Origin: Blepharisma stoltei ATCC 30299
Lineage: Eukaryota; Protista; Ciliophora
NCBI GenBank assembly: GCA_965603825.1
Contig: CBFDEM010000014.1
Coordinates: 558,001 to 622,000 of the forward strand
Reading direction: 5' to 3'
Length of the DNA stretch: 64,000 nucleotides
Made by a program: the position numbers and the translations under genes. Positions 3,213 through 59,139 of this stretch are shown here, in pieces (positions within the stretch are counted from its first letter, which is position 1; each line of letters opens with the position of its first letter). The notes beneath the pieces were generated by a model, which was not told where the DNA came from, did no database searches, and saw only the letters and a list, made by a program, of their open reading frames with translations.

Positions 3213-5360
3213 CTAAAGTGCAAAATTATAGTGATTTGTGCCGTTTTTCGAGTAAGACTCAGCTGAGCTCTCTCGGAACTTAGGTCGAGGGATTCTGGAA
3301 GGCGTAGACTGGTTTGCAGTCTGAATCGGCTGATATTTTGTTGGAGGCCTTCTCAACGCCAGTGGACTTGCGCTAAGCACTCTTTTAATATTCACATCTT
3401 TCACCTTAAGCTGCTGCAGAGCTTTATTTTTAGCTTGTGCTTCATTTTCTGCATGAGATTTTATTATTCTCAGCTTTTTATTTGCTTCATCTTGAAAATT
3501 TTTCAATAAAACTAGCTCTTTTCTATATTTCTCATTTTCTTCTGTAAGCTGTTTTTCTTTATTTTTCATTTTAATTATAAGTCCTCCGATTTTCGAGTCC
3601 CTATCTTTTATGGCATATTGGTAGCTTTCAATATCTCTTTCTAGCTTGTCTAGTTTCCTTAAAATTGTATTTTTATCAGCCCTTTCTTTTTCCAGCAGCC
3701 TAAGAGTCCTTTCTACTTCTTCATTTTTTAGGTTTTTTCTAATTGAATATCCTAAATCTACAGATTTAAGCCTAGTGCCTAGTGCTAATGTACAGACAGT
3801 TTCTCCAGAACTTTCTTCACAAGGATTGCAGTTTAAAATTACAGTTACCATGCTTTCTTCACCTCCTAAAGTCTGCTGCAGAATTCTTGTCAGCATAGAG
3901 TTTCTGTAAGGGATATGGTTTTGCTTGGTTTCTAGTGCTGCAATTACATCTTGCAGTGCTGATAAAGACTTGTTGATTAGCAAAGTTTCTTTTAAGATAT
4001 CTCCACTGACTTTACTTTTGCTTATTCGTTCACTGCCAGCTAAGTCTACAAATTGAATAATTCCTGTATGGCTTCCTTTTACAATTTTCAATGTATAAAT
4101 GCAATGGCTTCTGGATGAACTGGAATTCGACTCAGTAAATTTTGTGGATCTTTTAAGGGCTGCTTGCTGAATTAAAGTCAAGCATTGGCTAAACCAATCA
4201 TTTTCTAGCTTAATTTCAGCCATTTCAACAGTTTCTTTTCAGTTCTTGCTGAGTGCATCATTACTTAGCAAGTTTCTTACTTGTTCATTATAAATTTCAA
4301 TACAATTCAAATATACCTGATACTCTCCTACTATCGCCACTTTTAAAGCTTCCACAGATTTCGACAGCACTTCATTCATTGTATAAGTCTTCCCAGATCC
4401 AGTCTGCCCATAAGCTAAAATGCATGCCCTTCCTCCAGATGCTACCATATTAATCGATGGGGCAATGTCAAAAAACAAGTCGTCAATCGAAGACTCTGAC
4501 CCAAATATCCTATCAAATTCGAATTTCTTTATTTCAGTTATAGGTTTCCCTTTTTCTTTGTTCAAAAAAGTGCTGACTTGGATTCCCAACTCATCATAAG
4601 CCACACAAGTACTTTTATTTGTATCAGAATCCAGCACAGGCCGCACTTTTACTAAGACTTTTACACTGTGGCAGGCTTCTGCTGGCGAGTTTGTGCTTGA
4701 ATCAATGGAGTTTCTACGAGAAGAGATATGAGATCCAGATTTTTTGGTTTGTCTAGAAGTATCTAATTGCGATTTGAGCTCTTCCTGCTCCTTTAAGGTA
4801 TTAGATAGCATCTGTTCTAGCTCTGCTAGTCTTGTTGTGTCTCCTTTTTGTGTAGCCAAGGTTGCTATTTCTTGTCTAAGTTCATTGCATTCTTCTTTTA
4901 GCCTTTGTATTTCTACTTCTTTCGCATAGGTTATTTCATCAAGCTCACCTTTATACATGATAGCGTTCTCTTCAGCTTGGTATAAGCGCTCCTCTAAGTC
5001 TTGTTTTGAGTATTCAAGAATCCTGGCTGAGTTTTCCCATTGATCATTTAAATGTTCAAGCTCTCTTTTTTGTTCTTCAAATATTTTCAGCCTTGACCTA
5101 AGCTGATCGATTTCTTTTTGCAGTTTGCATACCTCTGACTCGTTTTTTTGGTACCTTTCCTTATAATTTTGGAGCTCTTCAGTAAGTTTTTCAATTTTAT
5201 TGACAGCTTGTGACAGCTTTTCATCTTTTTCGGCAACTTCAGATTCAAGAAGTTCTTCATATTCTTTGGATTGAGCTTGATAGCTGAGTAAAATTTACTC
5301 TTCGTATTCTTGCTTTAATTGGTCTAATTGTAAATAGATATCAGCCTCTTGATCACTCAT
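3213..5360 (-). CDS. Kinesin (kinesin-14-like motor) with N-terminal NudE/NDEL1-like coiled coil, about 710 aa
   Basis: ATG at 5360, 15-nt intron 5284-5298, TGA(W) at 4239-4241 joins the two track ORFs. Motor motifs GQTGSGKT, NSSSSRSH, DLAGSER, HIPYRNS; ends TAG. Confidence 0.92.
5284..5298 (-). other. 15-nt spliceosomal intron (GTAAATTTTACTCAG)
   Basis: GT-AG with A at -6; contains the in-frame TAA; removal gives continuous ...KQEYE-D-YQAQSKEYEE. Confidence 0.88.
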
Positions 5361-8327: not shown

Positions 8328-9779
<1,452 letters not shown>

Positions 9780-12073: not shown

Positions 12074-13918
12074 ATGGGCTGCTGTTCTTCAAACAACGAG
12101 CAAGTTCGTACTCTTGAAAAAGAAATCGCTAATCTTAAAAGCGAAAAAAAAGACCTTAATGAAAAACTTAACACCACAAATTCCACAACAATTATTCATG
12201 AAAACGAGCCTTCAAGCGATGTCGTTCAATTAATCAGCTCTGAGCAAAATGAAGTTTCTCAAGTTTTACATATTTTGATCAATTACCTTGGAAATGCAGG
12301 ACAAATGATCCATGAGATTGGGGTTAACTCAAAAATCAAAGATCTTGAAAAGCAACAGGGGGTCGAAAAAATTAAGAAATACATGACTGTGAGGAAGGAA
12401 GAGACGAGTCTTGAGTTAAGACTTTGTGAAAATGTTAAGCAAGCTGCTGAAAGGCTAGAACAACTGGATAGCGAAAAAAGAGCAGATATTAATAGCAAAA
12501 TTAATGAATTAGAAAGCTTAATTCCTGAAAGTTCCAATTCAAAGCCTTTTCTGGATGCAATTAAGAAAAAATCAGATGAATATGGTGGGAAAAAAGATTT
12601 AAATATTGTCAATGTGGCTACAAGGCTGCTAAATACGTTACATTTAGAGCATGAGATTGTGGTGCTAAAAAATAATTTACCAAAAAATTATGATGAGGTT
12701 GAAGGAGAAGCTGTTAAAAATTTAAAGCAAATCCAAGAAGAATTGCTACAAGCTCTAAATGAGTCTTATTTAAACCTCAAAAAGATCAGCTTAGACCATG
12801 GCTCTCCAGATGATAATGCAAAGATAAATTCTATGAAAAATCTCACTGAGCCAGAGTTTTTCTCTGATTCTATCTTATCTGTTGCAAATTCACTATCAAA
12901 TGGATTTAAAAATTTAATCTCAATAGAAAAAGAAAAAACAAGGATTTTGCAAGCGAATACAGTCGATAACGAAATTAATCAAATTGATGAAAAAATGAGC
13001 AAATACTTAGAGCAGTCAAATTCTGCAAAAGAGAAGACCCTTTCAAGTTTACAAAGACATTTGGGAGGAGCTGAAAAAGTTGACGTTCAAAAAATAACAG
13101 ATTTGTCAAAGCTTTTTAGCTCAGCCAAAGGAAATATCCATTCATCTTTACTAGGAGCTTTAGGGACTCTTAACCAAAAAAGTTTATTGAAGACTACTAG
13201 ATCGCTTCGGTCAAAAATAGAAACAATAATAAGCCATTCAGAACAGCAGGATAAAGCGTTATTTAACTTAGCTGAGCAGGTTGCAGGCGTTCAAAATCAT
13301 TTAGATGATCTTGAAATCCAATTAGACGAATTTTTGAAGCAAGAGATGAGAGAGTTAACCAGAACTGTATCAGCAAATGATCAAGAATCAAGAGATTTAT
13401 TGGACAAGCTTAAACCAGTGATTTTTGAAAGAAACTCCCAAGCTGAAACTGCTATGAATATAGTCGACCATCTTGGTGTAATCTTCAATAAATTTAAAGG
13501 TTCCCATAAAATTGAGCAAACTAGAGAGAAAATTCGAGAATACAATAAAGATGAAATTAATCGCGTAAAATCAGAAATGCAAGAAAAAATTAACCAATTA
13601 GAAGATAGAAAATCCCAGCTCGAAACTGAAAATGAAAGAATTGAAGCTCAAATAAAAATACTGCAAGCAAGCATACAAGCTGATGCCGAAATTGTTAACA
13701 ATTTGAGCCAAAGTTCGTCAAGCAAAGAAATGGAAATGAGCAACTTGAAAAATCAAGTCACAAGCTTAACCGAAGAAATTTCAAATTTAAAGGAAGAACT
13801 GGATAAGGCTCAAGATGAAATATCAGACATGAGGAAGGAAAATAGGACTTTGAAAAAGTCTATAAGAGAAAAAGAAAACGAAATTAGAGAGCTTAATGAA
13901 AAGGTTGGAGCAGCTTAG
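12074..13918 (+). CDS. Long coiled-coil protein with MGCCSS dual-acylation motif
   Basis: 614-aa ORF, heptad-rich; N-terminal Gly2-Cys3-Cys4-Ser6. Confidence 0.85.
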   Translation: MGCCSSNNEQVRTLEKEIANLKSEKKDLNEKLNTTNSTTIIHENEPSSDVVQLISSEQNEVSQVLHILINYLGNAGQMIHEIGVNSKIKDLEKQQGVEKIKKYMTVRKEETSLELRLCENVKQAAERLEQLDSEKRADINSKINELESLIPESSNSKPFLDAIKKKSDEYGGKKDLNIVNVATRLLNTLHLEHEIVVLKNNLPKNYDEVEGEAVKNLKQIQEELLQALNESYLNLKKISLDHGSPDDNAKINSMKNLTEPEFFSDSILSVANSLSNGFKNLISIEKEKTRILQANTVDNEINQIDEKMSKYLEQSNSAKEKTLSSLQRHLGGAEKVDVQKITDLSKLFSSAKGNIHSSLLGALGTLNQKSLLKTTRSLRSKIETIISHSEQQDKALFNLAEQVAGVQNHLDDLEIQLDEFLKQEMRELTRTVSANDQESRDLLDKLKPVIFERNSQAETAMNIVDHLGVIFNKFKGSHKIEQTREKIREYNKDEINRVKSEMQEKINQLEDRKSQLETENERIEAQIKILQASIQADAEIVNNLSQSSSSKEMEMSNLKNQVTSLTEEISNLKEELDKAQDEISDMRKENRTLKKSIREKENEIRELNEKVGAA

Positions 13919-30549: not shown

Positions 30550-31953
<1,404 letters not shown>

Positions 31954-37608: not shown

Positions 37609-37836
37609 TTACAAATTTTTTGCTTCTTCTACGATTTCTAATAGCCCAGGTGACATAGTATCACATGTATCTGGAGTCAGTTGGCCCGCACTTTCCTTAA
37701 AGAACGAACGGTTTGGAACGTTTTTTCCAAACTTCCTTAAGGAATACAATTTGTTATCTTCGAGCGGTTTAAGTATTATAAAGTTATATATTGGCGTCTC
37801 ACGAGGAATTTCATCTATGCTTAGAATGCATCCCAT
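37609..37836 (-). CDS. MGC-starting microprotein, 75 aa
   Basis: ATG 37836, MGCILS...KLYSLRKFG; GC-richer than its flanks. Confidence 0.65.
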   Translation of the reverse strand: MGCILSIDEIPRETPIYNFIILKPLEDNKLYSLRKFGKNVPNRSFFKESAGQLTPDTCDTMSPGLLEIVEEAKNL

Positions 37837-52856: not shown

Positions 52857-55121
52857 ATGGTAAATTTTACATAGATCTTAGCACAGCTTTTAAACAAATA
52901 CAGGCCTAAAACAAATCCCCCCCATCCTGGCCAAATAAATTTTGACTTTCCTCCTCCAATCGAAGCCGTTACTTTAGACAGGCGGCCACCTCAGCGCTGG
53001 TCTTCTCTGACAAGCCAACTTGCCGACATTGATTCAGACTCAGAAGAACAAATCTTATCTACTGAGCGTGAAAAGTTAAAAATCAGGAATACCCCAGTTA
53101 TCGAGTCCAAGTACAAAGAAGTCTGACAAAGAGCTCGAGCTAAAATTTTCAGCAAATTATTTATGATGAGACTGCAAAAAGAACTGAAAATTTATGGGAC
53201 TTCAGCAATTGCTAATGATTTATTAGAATCGCCTATGGACAATAAAAAACGAACGATTCAGCTGAAATCTGCAACCGCAATCAAAAATTTTATGAAAGGG
53301 GACCAAATTGAGCATTATTATGTCATAAACCAAGACGGAAAATTTAAATCGATATGAAATTTTCTGATAGCTATGCTGTTATTATATACAGCTATAGTTT
53401 TGCCTATAGAATTGGCATTTATTGACGGAAAAACTTATGATGTCTGATGATGGATAAATGTATGGATAAATGCAATTTTTTTTTCTGATGTCATAATAAA
53501 TTGTTTTACTACTTATACAGACTCAAATGGAACTGTTATTAAATCAAGGAAGAAAATTTTTATGAGGTACTTGAAATCGTGGCTTTTACTTGATATTGCG
53601 GCGTGCTTTCCTTTTGATTTCGTGGAGACTGATTCAGGAAGCTCGTCATCTACAAGTAAATATAACGGCTTAGCCCGATTAGCTAGGCTGCCAAGATTGT
53701 CAAGGCTTATAAGAATATCAAGGATGTTTAAGGTCGTCACAAATTATAATAAATTTGAGTTTGTGGAAAAAGTCCAAAATTTTTTTAACATAAAAAGAAC
53801 AGCACTAAGGCTTCTGATGTTTAGTATTACTGTACTTTTGTGTGTTCATGTGATTAGCTGCTTATGGTATTGATCCGCTAAAATGCAAGGATTCCCACCA
53901 GATTGCTGGGTAGTGAAATCAGGATATATGGATTTAACATCAGAATCCCTTTATTTAACATCCATGTATTGAGCGTTTACCACCTTATCAACAGTAGGAT
54001 ACGGAGACATCCACCCATGAAATGATTTAGAAGTCTTAATATGCATGGTCTGAATGATGTTCGGGCTCTGCTTTTTTTCTTTTACAATCGGCAGCTTAAG
54101 TTCCATGCTCTCCAGCTTGGATACTCGAGAAATCGTTTTAAACAATAAATTAACAATTATAGATGAGTTTGCGAAAGAGACAAAGCTGAAAAAAGTATTG
54201 AGACTTCGCCTGCGGCATGCGTTGAAATATTCAACAGAAAGTGCAGGATTCTCTTGAAGCGATAAACTAAATATTTTCAATGAGTTGCCGAGAGAGCTTA
54301 AATATGAAGTTGCACTAAGCATGCATCAAGGGGCAATTAAACATCTTCCTTTTTTTATGGAAAAAGACAAGGTTTTTGTAGCGTCAGTTGTCCCATTTCT
54401 CCAGCATTTATTTCTTAAGCATAAAGAAATAATTTTCACTGAAGGAGAATATGCTGATGAAATTTATTTTCTCTATAAAGGCACTGTAAATTATGTCATG
54501 GGACCTGAAAAAGTTTCTTACAAAAAGCTGCAAGAAGGTTCATATTTTGGCGACATAGAAGTTATTGAAGTAATCCTTAGGAAATACACAGTGGTCGCCA
54601 AAACTGACGTGCATTTGCTTACAATGAGCAAATCTGTTGTCAGCTATATATTAGAAGAATTTCCAACCATTAGCAAAGATATGAGAGAAATTGCCTATAA
54701 AAGAGACAAAATAAACCAATTAGCCAAAGAAGAATTTGCAGAATATCTCAGACTGAAAGAAACTAAAGAAATTGAAGGAAAAGATTTAAAAGAAGTAAAA
54801 GACATGATTAGAGATATTGTTGACAAAAGGAAAAATACCAAAGAAATGCTTTCTCCAAAAGAAAAAGAAGAAATCAAGTTCAGCGAAGTTGTAAACAAAA
54901 TGGACGAAAACAATTTTATGCTAACCAAAATGGAAGGAAAACTGCAATCAATTTGCGAGATTTCTAATGAAATTTTGGAATTTATGAGGAAAGATCCCAA
55001 AAAAGGACTCCCCAAGCTAAAAGTGCCGAAAAAGTTGAAAGGATTAGCTGAAGAAAGAGACAAGACTGAAAGAAGCTTCAAATTCGATATGAATACGTTA
55101 GAATTTAAACCTGTGGAATAG
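52857..55121 (+). CDS. EAG/KCNH- or CNG-type cyclic-nucleotide-domain K+ channel, about 749 aa
   Basis: ATG 52857 followed by a 15-nt intron; one frame with TGA=W; S4 RLARLPRLSRLIRISR, pore TTLSTVGYGDI, C-linker, CNBD GSYFGDIE. Confidence 0.93.
52860..52874 (+). other. 15-nt intron immediately after the start codon (GTAAATTTTACATAG)
   Basis: GT-AG with A at -6, 13/15 identical to the kinesin intron; contains an in-frame TAG. Confidence 0.8.
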
Positions 55122-55272
55122 TGATGATATATAAATTTCGTAATAAAATAAACTGCAAGATATAAAGCTTTTATAGATATTTATTATACAAAAAATTGTT
55201 ATTAAATATTAAAGCTTCATTTTTCAATATGTTTAATATAATTTAGAAACAATAAAGACTATATATTAAAAA

Positions 55273-55479
55273 ATGGGTTGTACAGCAAACATAAAAGGCC
55301 ACAATTGTTCAGGAGATGAAGAAACATCAGAGGAAAAAAATAATAACCCGCCAGATTTACCAAAAGCAGACCTAAGTCTAAGTCTACCAGCAAATGGTAA
55401 AAGTTTCAAGATCAGGGTTTACGGACCAACAACAAATGGATTAATTAATGAGCCTACTGTGGAAACAATAAACGGTTAA
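55273..55479 (+). CDS. Acylated microprotein 1 (68 aa)
   Basis: MGCTAN...KSFKIRVYGPTTNGLINE. Confidence 0.75.
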   Translation: MGCTANIKGHNCSGDEETSEEKNNNPPDLPKADLSLSLPANGKSFKIRVYGPTTNGLINEPTVETING

Positions 55480-55981
55480 TTTTCACTAGGCTCAGCAAAC
55501 GATTTAACATAATTTAACCAATTTTTATGGAAAATGTAGTAAAATTTTGTTGTAGAGATAATTATAGGAAATCTATCTTTTCTTAAAAAAGAGGATGGTA
55601 GATAAACGTGAAATTCAAACAAGGATTGTATAAAGAAATAGACTGATGAATTTTTTTGGCAGCCTGTGGTAGAAAATGGAGCAATATAATTCCTATTTTG
55701 TTCATATTGAAAATCCATTATATTACTTATCAGATAGACTTTAATTAAATTAACAAAATCATTACTTCCATCAATTTCCTGATAAAGAATCAAATAAACT
55801 TAGTCCTTTGGACAAAAGCCATTATAATTGTTGAAAGCCTTTATTTTTAATTTATTTTCCCTAAAAATCTTATTTTTACCATAATTATAATATCAATTTT
55901 GATATTTCACCAAAAATAAGTCTCTCAATATCTCAATAAAGCAACAAACATTTCATAATCTCATAAATTAAATTTGGATAA

Positions 55982-56212
55982 ATGGGGTGTGGAAAGCATT
56001 CGAAGACAAGTCATCAGACTTATGATAAAATCTCTATAAACTTATACGGCAAAAGTTCATGCTCAAAAAAGAAGCAAGGAAAAAACAACTCATTTTCAAT
56101 ACATGAAAAAAGGAAATTGTACTCGATTAGGATATTCACTCCTGACGTTTTAGGACTTCAAGAGAATCCAGGTGGTTTAGAAAATAATGCAAAGGTTGAG
56201 TATAGTATTTAA
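55982..56212 (+). CDS. Acylated microprotein 2 (76 aa)
   Basis: MGCGKHS...RKLYSIRIFTPDVLGLQE. Confidence 0.78.
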   Translation: MGCGKHSKTSHQTYDKISINLYGKSSCSKKKQGKNNSFSIHEKRKLYSIRIFTPDVLGLQENPGGLENNAKVEYSI

Positions 56213-56884
56213 TCATAACAATTTTGTGTAAATCCTCTATTATTTATATTTTTTGAAATTGAAAGGCAAAAATTTTATTTCGCAAAAATTGCTATTGATT
56301 TGCGAATGCGAGATTTAATAGCATAAAACTAAATGAAATATAAATTTTTACCTTTTCTTACATACAATAGGCAGTATTTGAACACTTCTTTTTTTAATAT
56401 TTTATTAAGCATGGATATTTATTTCTTATAATTTAATTTAATATCTTTATCGGCACTGTGAAATACAGAAATATACATTAATTCAGGGAGAATGCTCAAT
56501 TTTATTTATCAATTTTAAATTCTTTCGCCTAAATTCATGAGAATTAATTAAAAAATGCACCATCGGATCAAATTCCAAAGCTTAAAACGATTTTTAAGCA
56601 TTAATACAAAAATCTAATTCTAAAAATAAAATGCCAAATTAAGTAAAATTTTTACCATTACTGTTGATTAAGCCTAATTGTTTTTCTAAATTAAGCTATT
56701 TTAAAGGATTTATGACAGTTATATAAAGCTGCATCGTTAAAATTTTTTAATTTGCATTTTTGCTAGTCTTTTAAAAATTGTTCATTCAGAAAAATAAATA
56801 GCCTAATTTATAAGGTCTTAACAGAAATTATCATTAAATTAGTTTTCATTAAGTCACCATTTCATAATAAAAAATTCTTCAAAA

Positions 56885-57049
56885 ATGGGCTGCGGTCTCT
56901 CAAAAGGATCTAAAATATCAGCAAGAAAAAGAATTGAATTAGTAGAAAAGAAAAGCAAGTATATAATTCGAGTTTTTGGTCCATCTTATATCGGTTTATT
57001 TGATGAATCAACGTCTTTGCCTCAGCCTAACGCTGAGAAAAGTGTGTAA
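56885..57049 (+). CDS. Acylated microprotein 3 (54 aa; below the ORF-track cutoff)
   Basis: MGCGLSKGSKISARKRIELVEKKSKYIIRVFGPSYIGLFDESTSLPQPNAEKSV-TAA, translated by hand. Confidence 0.78.
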   Translation: MGCGLSKGSKISARKRIELVEKKSKYIIRVFGPSYIGLFDESTSLPQPNAEKSV

Positions 57050-57562
57050 CTTTATAATTTTAATGAAAATTTAAAAAGAACTGCTTTAAAAAGATAATAT
57101 ATTAATTTCTGTTAAAATTTTTTATTCTAACTTGAATTTATAAATCATTACCTAATAATTAGGTAGACCTATAATAATAAAATCTGATTAATATTTTATT
57201 TTCTGGTTTGGGTTAATAATTTGAAGTATTATCAGAATCTATTGAAATTTATATAAATATGTCAGTTTAATTCGTGAAATAAGTGTCTGTGTAATAATGA
57301 TAGCCGGAAATTAAAATAAATTGTTTATAAGATACCACATTTAACTCTATAATTAATCAGCTAAAATTAAATACACTATCTAAAGCAGCTTGATTGTAGA
57401 ACATTTATTAATTATCTCAAAATATTTTTATATAAGGTTTTAATGACGAATATTTAAAATTCAAGGATTTTTAAGAAGAGGAGCTAAGCATGTTTATGAT
57501 TAAATTATTCGCATTTATTAGCCATTTTTTTGGCCATTTATATATATAAACTATTATTTAAG

Positions 57563-57781
57563 ATGGGTTGTGGGATACCAAAACACAAAGGATTACTCGA
57601 AAACTCAATGACTTTAAAAAATTATAGTGCTAGAACAAATCACTTTCAAGAACTTTCAAGTCACATAAAAGATTTGATGCTTAAGAAAAAGAGGAAAAGA
57701 TACATCATCAGAGTTTTTACCCCTGATACTATAGGGTTAAACGATGATTCAATCGCTTTACCGCTGTCAAAATCAAGGTAA
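57563..57781 (+). CDS. Acylated microprotein 4 (72 aa)
   Basis: MGCGIPK...RKRYIIRVFTPDTIGLNDDSIALP. Confidence 0.78.
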   Translation: MGCGIPKHKGLLENSMTLKNYSARTNHFQELSSHIKDLMLKKKRKRYIIRVFTPDTIGLNDDSIALPLSKSR

Positions 57782-58305
57782 AGCGTGTAATTTCACTGAT
57801 ATCTAATTAAGTTTAAAATCTTTACTTGAAAAATAAATTACTATATATCAAAAATTCCCTATTAAAAACTTGTCCTAATGCTTATGAAAAGACTCATGCT
57901 AATCTATGATTACCTCATAGAAATTCTAAAAAAATAGAATTTCCTGTTAACTTTCACCAAAAGGTCGAACTTGAAATCAATTCCCAACTCCTGTGTCGTG
58001 CTAGGGATTTGCCAGATAAATCTAGATATTGTTTCAAGCTTATCTGAACCTCCAGTTTACAATTTCTTGTCCTTCCTTCCCACATGGTAAAAATTTAACC
58101 CTAAAAGCTGACTTGGTCTTGGCCTCCGCACTGCTTGAATTTCTTACATATCATTTCTGTCTATTTTTGGATTTTTAAAGCTTGCCTAATACAAATATGG
58201 CAAGCTATGCCTAGATAGATCCATCATATTTAAAATGATTTTCCATATCAGTTTTTCCCTTTTGAAACCAATATAATATCTTACATATATTTCATTTGCA
58301 ACAAA

Positions 58306-59139
58306 ATGGGCTGTGGCCAAATAAAGAATGGACCTCCTTTCACATCTACTTTATTTGAACTTCAACCAAAAGTAATTCTCCAGCAAAGTACTCCAGACAA
58401 TGCTTCTGAGCCTTTTAATTGTCAAAATGTTTATCACATTGAAGATCTCAATAATTCGATTCTAAAAGAAAAGATCCGTGAAGTCAGAGTGAAGCATATT
58501 CATTATAACTCACTTGACTTGAATAATGAAATATCCCTTATCAAGGGAAAATACATCGGATTAGTTTCGGTTAAGGATGCTTTTTTTTCTCAATGCCATG
58601 CTCAGTGCATTAAGGACTTCCAAATTACAGATGGGATATTTATTATGCTATTAAGTATTTATGCATCAAACCCGTCAATTATCGCAAAATTAAAAGCTTC
58701 CCAGAGTCCTCCATATATCAGTATTAACAAAGAAAGCCTGAGGACAGAATCAAGAAATATTGTGGACGCTTGGGATAATTTTGCGAATAAAATGAAAGAG
58801 CTGAAAGAAACATATGCTGGGATCCCAATTGTAAGGAAAAGAATGCAGCAAGCAAGATTAACGCTGGAGAATTATTTAGTTGAAATTGATAGATCTGATC
58901 CTCCACGAGGGGAGCTAGTAGCTTTACAAATAAACCAAAATTTAGCTGAAGAGGGTATATCAATTATAAATAAGCTGGAAACGGAATCAGATAAGCTTCA
59001 TGAAGATATTAAAGATTATGTAAAATCAAAGCTTGATAAAGAAGAAGTCATTAATTTAGGAAAAGAAGCTATTGCGTTAGAAGCTTATGATGGTAATAAA
59101 ATTTTGCATTCTGTTATAGCTCCGAAATTAAATAAATAG
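58306..59139 (+). CDS. Hypothetical helical protein with MGCG acylation motif
   Basis: 277-aa ATG-TAG ORF. Confidence 0.8.
   Translation: MGCGQIKNGPPFTSTLFELQPKVILQQSTPDNASEPFNCQNVYHIEDLNNSILKEKIREVRVKHIHYNSLDLNNEISLIKGKYIGLVSVKDAFFSQCHAQCIKDFQITDGIFIMLLSIYASNPSIIAKLKASQSPPYISINKESLRTESRNIVDAWDNFANKMKELKETYAGIPIVRKRMQQARLTLENYLVEIDRSDPPRGELVALQINQNLAEEGISIINKLETESDKLHEDIKDYVKSKLDKEEVINLGKEAIALEAYDGNKILHSVIAPKLNK

Follow-up and report, generated by a model that had tools for sequence, protein, structure and literature searches.

A tandem array of four small genes

We analysed a 64,000-nucleotide stretch of Blepharisma stoltei ATCC 30299 (assembly GCA_965603825.1, contig CBFDEM010000014.1, positions 558,001 to 622,000 of the forward strand; hereafter the window), and in it a tandem array of four small open reading frames (ORFs) at window positions 55273-57781 whose products share an N-terminus and a motif. 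A first-pass annotation, made from the letters of the DNA, had listed four same-strand ORFs of 68, 76, 54 and 72 amino acids (aa) here, and all four proved to be as described: they lie on the plus strand, start with Met-Gly-Cys (MGC) and end in TAA, and the four motif strings given at that time are exact. The motif, [FY]xIR[VI][FY]xPxxxGL, spans 13 residues and is present in every one of them. The reading of TGA as Trp is confirmed by the channel gene upstream, where TGA stands in frame in place of Trp codons, and is that of the published B. stoltei genome (41 Mbp, 66% AT, 25,711 genes, 15/16-nucleotide introns, UGA = Trp; PMC9942806). The array comprises the following genes.

55273-55479, plus strand: A1, 68 aa, starting MGCTANIK, motif FKIRVYGPTTNGL at 55405-55443
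55982-56212, plus strand: A2, 76 aa, starting MGCGKHSK, motif YSIRIFTPDVLGL at 56120-56158; protein database entry P0004
56885-57049, plus strand: A3, 54 aa, starting MGCGLSKG, motif YIIRVFGPSYIGL at 56960-56998; family hidden Markov model (HMM) E-value 4e-17
57563-57781, plus strand: A4, 72 aa counted from its ATG, starting MGCGIPKH, motif YIIRVFTPDTIGL at 57701-57739; protein database entry P0002

A3 is the only array member without an entry among the protein-database matches, and is thus unannotated there.

The motif marks a family of seven genes

In a six-frame translation of the window, the motif was confined to the four array ORFs. We then searched the B. stoltei somatic genome (G000; 41.46 Mb in 64 contigs) with a degenerate DNA pattern for IR[VI][FY]xPxxxGL and obtained eight sites in 41.5 Mb, seven of them in family members and one containing a stop; about one site is expected by chance genome-wide, and a reversed-pattern control over the same sequence gave none. 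The first-pass annotation had proposed profile scans of heterotrich genomes, and a scan of the B. stoltei genome with the family HMM returned exactly seven copies, the same as the pattern search. The family in this species therefore consists of seven genes with products of 54-79 aa. An alignment of nine members (the seven B. stoltei copies plus P0012 and P0003, two relatives described below) has as its invariant columns M1, G2 and C3 together with the I, R, P, G and L of the motif.

A second array lies in a duplicated block

The three remaining copies form a second array on contig C11.

C11:616243-616037: B1, 68 aa, ohnolog of A1
C11:614998-614768: B2, 76 aa, ohnolog of A2
C11:614147-613908: B3, 79 aa, pairing with both A3 and A4

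The closest relatives of A3 are A4 and B3. On C11 the order is B1, B2, B3 and then a paralog of the 277-aa gene that follows the array in the window; order and relative orientation are the same at both loci. The likeness extends much further: window positions 3651-59136 are colinear, in inverted order, with C11:612702-665998 for at least 55 kb; many genes along this block have been lost on one side or the other, and about a dozen paralog pairs are 41-95% identical. As the colinearity runs across the whole window, this is a large duplicated block rather than a local copy. One further pair, window 30577-31899 against C11:591111-592437, is 95-98% identical and lies off the colinear order.

A Blepharisma-specific whole-genome duplication, WGD-beta, has a Ks peak at 1.8 and was dated by its authors to ∼112 million years ago (PMC13685798). 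The window/C11 block is consistent with an ohnologous pair from this event, and the synonymous distance between A1 and B1 (dS 1.81; see below) coincides with the published peak (PMC13685798). It would follow that an array of at least three genes is older than the duplication, and all three ancestral lineages have been kept in both copies ever since.

Relatives in other heterotrichs

A profile search of 1.84 billion representative proteins added one further small member, P0012 (63 aa, with an MGC start and YKIRIYEPNKIGL). It is encoded on Logan contig L010 (run SRR24908292), which derives from a divergent heterotrich and is syntenic with the window, carrying a K+ channel gene, a microprotein gene, a 278-aa MGCG gene, an LSDAT gene and an 859-aa gene. 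The flanking proteins are 66-88% identical to those of the window, the MGCG protein only 37-44%. One intact microprotein copy is found on L010, at the position of the array. A second, weak copy lies at ∼4102-4194 on the plus strand, immediately before the gene for the 278-aa MGCG protein, in the place that A4 occupies in B. stoltei; it reads RKNKKYSIRVVDW(TGA)SKFSLYD, has a stop before it, has lost the Pro and the Gly of the motif and scores an HMM E-value of 0.011. By these features it has probably decayed, and intact and decayed copies side by side suggest birth-and-death turnover. A third species is represented by the transcript P0003 from MMETSP, a complete ORF of 79 aa whose product is 89% identical to B3.

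An exact-product look-up of contigs encoding P0003 or P0004 gave no match, and JGI metagenome contigs yielded 248 pattern matches and no relatives. Across these collections the searches show a family restricted to Blepharisma-type heterotrichs.

Purifying selection on the ORFs

Along their 68 aa, A1 and B1 align without gaps at 69% identity. By the method of Nei and Gojobori, their proportion of synonymous differences (pS) is 0.68 and that of nonsynonymous differences (pN) 0.16, with dS 1.81 and dN/dS ∼0.10, and the differences are distributed 14/10/32 over the three codon positions, a clear third-position bias. A2 and B2, both of 76 aa, have a pN of 0.41 and a saturated pS of 0.79; A4 and B3 (pN 0.37, pS 0.73) are still joined by a blastn alignment over 57546-57825 at 68%. 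Over all inter-array pairs, pS lies at 0.68-0.79 (saturated), pN at 0.16-0.41 and dN/dS at ∼0.1-0.2, and the paralogous pair of 277-aa MGCG proteins is in the same regime (pS 0.63, pN 0.147). Around the array, nucleotide similarity between the window and C11 survives only at 55253-55480, at 57546-57825 and in the 277-aa gene. Low dN/dS and conservation limited to the ORFs thus bear out purifying selection, on which the first-pass annotation had let the family stand or fall. Judged by these substitution patterns, the seven genes are real, and purifying selection has maintained them intact ever since a duplication old enough for synonymous sites to be saturated.

The same annotation had held that only the anchor and the motif are constrained. 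This is correct among the members of an array, where the linkers (20-45 residues after the MGC) diverge beyond alignment; between ohnologs, however, the whole length is constrained, as in A1/B1.

These data also bear on the possibility that the ORFs are non-functional, be it that they arose by chance, that they are 5′ fragments of the MGCG gene in the course of decay, or that they reflect noise in the annotation. They are very short, one of them is unannotated, their first 14 residues resemble the N-terminus of the 277-aa neighbour (hhalign probability 9.6%), and copies can die, as the probably decayed one on L010 illustrates. Yet all seven are intact despite saturated synonymous sites, ohnologs have preserved their lengths (68/68 and 76/76), dN/dS is low, third-position bias is clear, and conservation is confined to the ORFs, which stand amid unalignable spacers. 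A syntenic ortholog in another species, a transcript in a second and the low chance expectation of the motif point the same way, and we regard a non-functional origin as extremely unlikely.

The intergenic spacers

The genes of the array are separated by three AT-rich spacers.

55480-55981, 56213-56884 and 57050-57562, no strand: intergenic spacers, GC 20-25%, separated from one another by A2 and A3

Their lengths are 502, 672 and 513 bp; 524 bp separate A4 from the next gene and 151 bp precede A1. GC content is 33-37% in the ORFs versus 15-31% across these five spacers, and the array is the largest stretch of the window without an open frame of at least 90 aa. The spacers had been called unusually long. 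This holds against the median ORF-free gap of the window (210 bp), but they are only ∼1.3-1.7 times the genome mean of ∼390 bp, a value that follows from 25,711 genes with 10.1 Mb of DNA between them (PMC9942806 and its supplementary information). No repeats common to the spacers and no Rfam matches in them were found, the HMM detected no further family remnants within them, and they have no similarity to the spacers of the C11 array. The C11 paralogon has nothing equivalent to a 105-aa minus-strand ORF in spacer 1 (55476-55793), which on that comparison probably arose by chance.

Comparison with known families

That the family would prove to be an unrecognised one was borne out: it has no relative in Pfam, the PDB or the ESM Atlas, and its members in the protein databases are 'unnamed' or 'uncharacterized' Blepharisma proteins. 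The seven members gave nothing above noise in Pfam (E ∼0.08-0.1); a profile search of the PDB returned nothing below an E-value of 0.3, and its top matches were not fibronectin type III (FN3) domains. In the Atlas there were no feature matches, and the structure matches, obtained with a model of 0.47 predicted local distance difference test (pLDDT), are meaningless. A literature search found no paper that combined Blepharisma with myristoylation.

The one resemblance that needed closer scrutiny was to FN3. The microproteins might be remnants or distant homologues of the C-terminal E-F-G strands of FN3/Ig-like domains, the motif corresponding to the F strand and the FG turn. In line with this, the profile search of the 1.84 billion representatives returned giant FN3/cadherin-like repeat proteins, among them P0008 (2424 aa; E 2.5e-16 over 10 stretches) and further ones within P0009-P0013, whose F strand reads YxIRVYAxNExGISE. 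Aligned by hhalign with 13 FN3 repeats of P0008, the family matched over 37 columns, from the E to the G strand, with a probability of 59% and an E-value of 9e-5, the spacing Y..RV[YF]x.x..G being identical in the motif and the repeats. This target, however, was picked post hoc as the best match, and every single FN3 repeat scored at most 10 bits, with a per-domain E-value of ∼1e5 or worse; the impressive totals arise from the summation of 10-18 weak repeats, and FN3 homology is therefore rejected. None of the seven members matched Pfam fn3 (PF00041) at E-values up to 10. In addition, a seven-strand sandwich (a domain of ∼85-100 aa) would not fit into proteins that measure 54-79 aa and are not conserved in their N-terminal parts, and AlphaFold2 models (pTM 0.15-0.16, i.e. 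of low confidence) contained neither strands nor a β-sandwich. Descent from FN3 is thus very unlikely. What the microproteins do have in common with the FN3 F-strand/FG-turn (YxFRVxAxNxxGxS) is the residue spacing Y/F..R-V/I-Y/F..x..G, without a full domain or a predicted sandwich, and the resemblance is best treated as an analogy that would indicate a propensity for a strand and a turn. By these comparisons, the microprotein family is undescribed.

The putative N-terminal anchor

Gly2 and Cys3, the latter a candidate palmitoylation site, are invariant in all nine members, and many members have basic residues among their first 10 positions. An M-G-C start is likewise found in SH4-type proteins (the Src-family kinases Lck and Fyn, G-alpha-i/o), where it heads large folded proteins; here, in contrast, it heads predicted-disordered proteins of 54-79 aa without any other known domain. 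The genome encodes an N-myristoyltransferase (NMT; PF01233, E 1.9e-69, G000:C26:67397-67873). The PROSITE PS00008 pattern for NMT substrates reads G-{EDRKHPFYW}-x(2)-[STAGCN]-{P}; five of the nine N-termini fit this pattern, which may not be the preference of the ciliate NMT. Because only these five fit, myristoylation is predicted to be likely rather than proven.

Small proteins that combine an acyl anchor with one interaction element are known from other systems: AKAP18-alpha/AKAP7-alpha, LAMTOR1/p18, SMP-1, HASPB and ISP1-4 are all of this kind. AKAP18-alpha/AKAP7-alpha has 81 aa, a myristoyl and a palmitoyl group and a single PKA-docking helix, while Leishmania SMP-1 and HASPB and Toxoplasma ISP1-4 are small lipid-anchored proteins of protists, in which dual acylation serves flagellar or alveolar targeting. 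Our microproteins have no sequence similarity to any of these, and differ from them in that their putative interaction element is the β-prone [FY]xIR[VI][FY]xPxxxGL, which is neither a folded domain nor an amphipathic helix.

MGC starts are frequent in the window (8 of 152 ORFs of at least 50 aa). They include a 483-aa ORF at 8328-9779 (plus strand; MGCYQSK), whose C11 paralog is 95% identical, and a 614-aa ORF at 12074-13918 (plus strand; MGCCSS). A 75-aa MGC ORF at 37609-37836 on the minus strand, beginning MGCILSIDEIPRETPIYNF, does not belong to the family; since tblastx aligns it at 68-77% identity with a conserved paralog at C11:627913-628158, it is probably another real microprotein gene.

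Predicted structure and docking motifs

AlphaFold2 was run on B3 and A1 with the 9-sequence alignment. Mean pLDDT was 61, pTM (predicted template modelling score) was 0.15-0.16 and no fold was obtained: the B3 model has a single helix, located in the linker, and the A1 model has no secondary structure. In both, confidence peaks over the motif (∼70-74). Such a prediction is what would be expected if the protein is disordered and has a single binding element, a conclusion limited by the shallow alignment.

We compared the motif with known docking patterns, a comparison that yields leads only. The first-pass annotation had considered phosphatase anchors, a guess now weakened: neither the PP1 RVxF pattern ([RK]-x(0,1)-[VIL]-{P}-[FW]) nor the calcineurin PxIxIT pattern (P-x-I-x-[IV]-x) matches any of the nine members. 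The motifs of all nine also lack the 14-3-3 pattern. The generic MAPK docking pattern of ELM, DOC_MAPK_gen, consists of a basic cluster, 2-4 residues and hydrophobic-x-hydrophobic, and this permissive pattern is fitted by KRKxYxIR[VI] in eight of the nine. A Thr-Pro follows the motif in five of the nine and is not conserved; it is too near the docking site to be the cognate phospho-acceptor, a difference from MAPK D-motif substrates.

Instead of binding a partner, the motif might bind itself: its β-prone YxIRVF strand would self-associate, and the peptides would build a cortical or alveolar membrane skeleton or a membrane microdomain. The alternating hydrophobic, strongly β-prone pattern does resemble edge or core strands of β-sandwiches, several paralogs are kept in both ohnologous arrays, as would be expected of dosage-sensitive structural components, and in other alveolates dual acylation directs small proteins to the alveolar membranes, the Toxoplasma ISPs being an example. 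The proteins, however, have no repeat or coiled-coil architecture, predicted structure is very low and the linkers diverge freely, which makes a self-assembling scaffold unlikely.

Neighbouring genes

The array is flanked by two genes on the same strand, both of which had been correctly placed in the first-pass annotation.

53322-55121, plus strand: 3′ part of a K+ channel gene, with a TVGYGD filter, an S4-like arginine repeat RLARLPRLSRLIRISR and a cNMP_binding domain (PF00027, E 1e-12)
58306-59139, plus strand: MGCG orphan gene, 277 aa, adjoining microprotein genes in all three loci

The array starts 151 bp downstream of the channel gene, and the same adjacency, with an orthologous channel, is seen on the divergent contig L010. 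This could mean that the microproteins act on the neighbouring cyclic-nucleotide-binding channel, either as auxiliary subunits, as had been suggested, or as its regulators. No copy of the channel was found in the C11 paralogon, however, and there the array has been kept intact next to an unrelated upstream ORF. Because the C11 array has no channel neighbour, a dedicated channel-subunit role is argued against. Adjacency is in any case weak evidence in a gene-dense somatic genome, and what adjoins the microprotein genes at each of the three loci is the 277-aa MGCG gene rather than the channel; the channel-subunit proposal is accordingly very unlikely.

The MGCG protein of 277 aa is an orphan as well. 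Its identity is 74% with the paralog on C11 and 37-44% with the ortholog on L010, which was found by synteny. The protein database contains only a single paralog, no Pfam match passes the curated cut-off (best E 0.026), and the Atlas, where the model of this protein has a pLDDT of 0.35, contains no relative. With the microproteins the MGCG protein shares nothing beyond the 14 N-terminal residues noted above, and an origin of the microproteins from this gene was rejected on account of so limited a likeness and its 9.6% probability. By linkage, it is a candidate partner of the microproteins.

What the microproteins may do

We consider it somewhat more probable than its negation (∼55%) that the genes encode small, probably dually acylated, disordered proteins that are tethered to a membrane and present a short linear binding motif. 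What we infer here is that the proteins are acylated, that they reside at a membrane, that they dock, and which partner they may bind. By analogy with SH4 proteins, the Met-Gly-Cys N-terminus, N-myristoylated at Gly2 and S-palmitoylated at Cys3, would tie the protein to a membrane, for which the plasma membrane, the cilia and the cortical alveoli are candidates. A variable linker of 20-45 residues follows, then usually a basic patch and then [FY]xIR[VI][FY]xPxxxGL, which would take an extended or hairpin shape upon binding and thereby recruit or regulate a partner at the membrane. The partner may be the 277-aa MGCG neighbour, which was duplicated along with the array, or a kinase able to recognize a docking site of basic residues plus hydrophobic-x-hydrophobic.

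Several observations weigh against this tethered-peptide reading. Disorder predicted from a 9-sequence alignment could simply be a failed prediction. Four of the nine N-termini deviate from the NMT pattern at the [STAGCN] position, with His in A2 and B2 and Pro in A4 and P0003. The D-site expression is of low specificity, fails in A1 and leaves the conserved [FY]xPxxxGL half of the motif unexplained. Finally, transcript support comes solely from P0003, the relative of B3 in another species, and not from the genes of the window.

Of the proposal made in the first-pass annotation, an undescribed family of membrane-tethered docking peptides, the part that stands is an undescribed family under selection with an invariant MGC and motif, while the phosphatase and channel guesses have lost ground. 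Going beyond the tethered-peptide reading, we propose only tentatively that the motif may be a new class of docking site that recruits a signalling enzyme (e.g. a MAPK-type kinase) or the 277-aa orphan to the cortex or the cilia, the paralogs being tunable membrane 'address tags' kept in duplicate since the Blepharisma genome duplication.

Blepharisma has ∼4,150 genus-specific gene families, which are typically short and lowly expressed (PMC13685798). The family described here is one well-behaved orphan example among these thousands and settles no long-standing question, but it is a validated computational case of functional microproteins, 54-79 aa long, from a ciliate that branches early, and annotation had missed one of them. 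It is also a natural experiment of unusual strength: both copies of an old duplicated block retained the three ancestral genes, while decay affected the spacers and many of the neighbours. Should the acyl anchor and the role in docking prove real, the motif would be a new handle for finding the membrane-recruited partner in heterotrichs.

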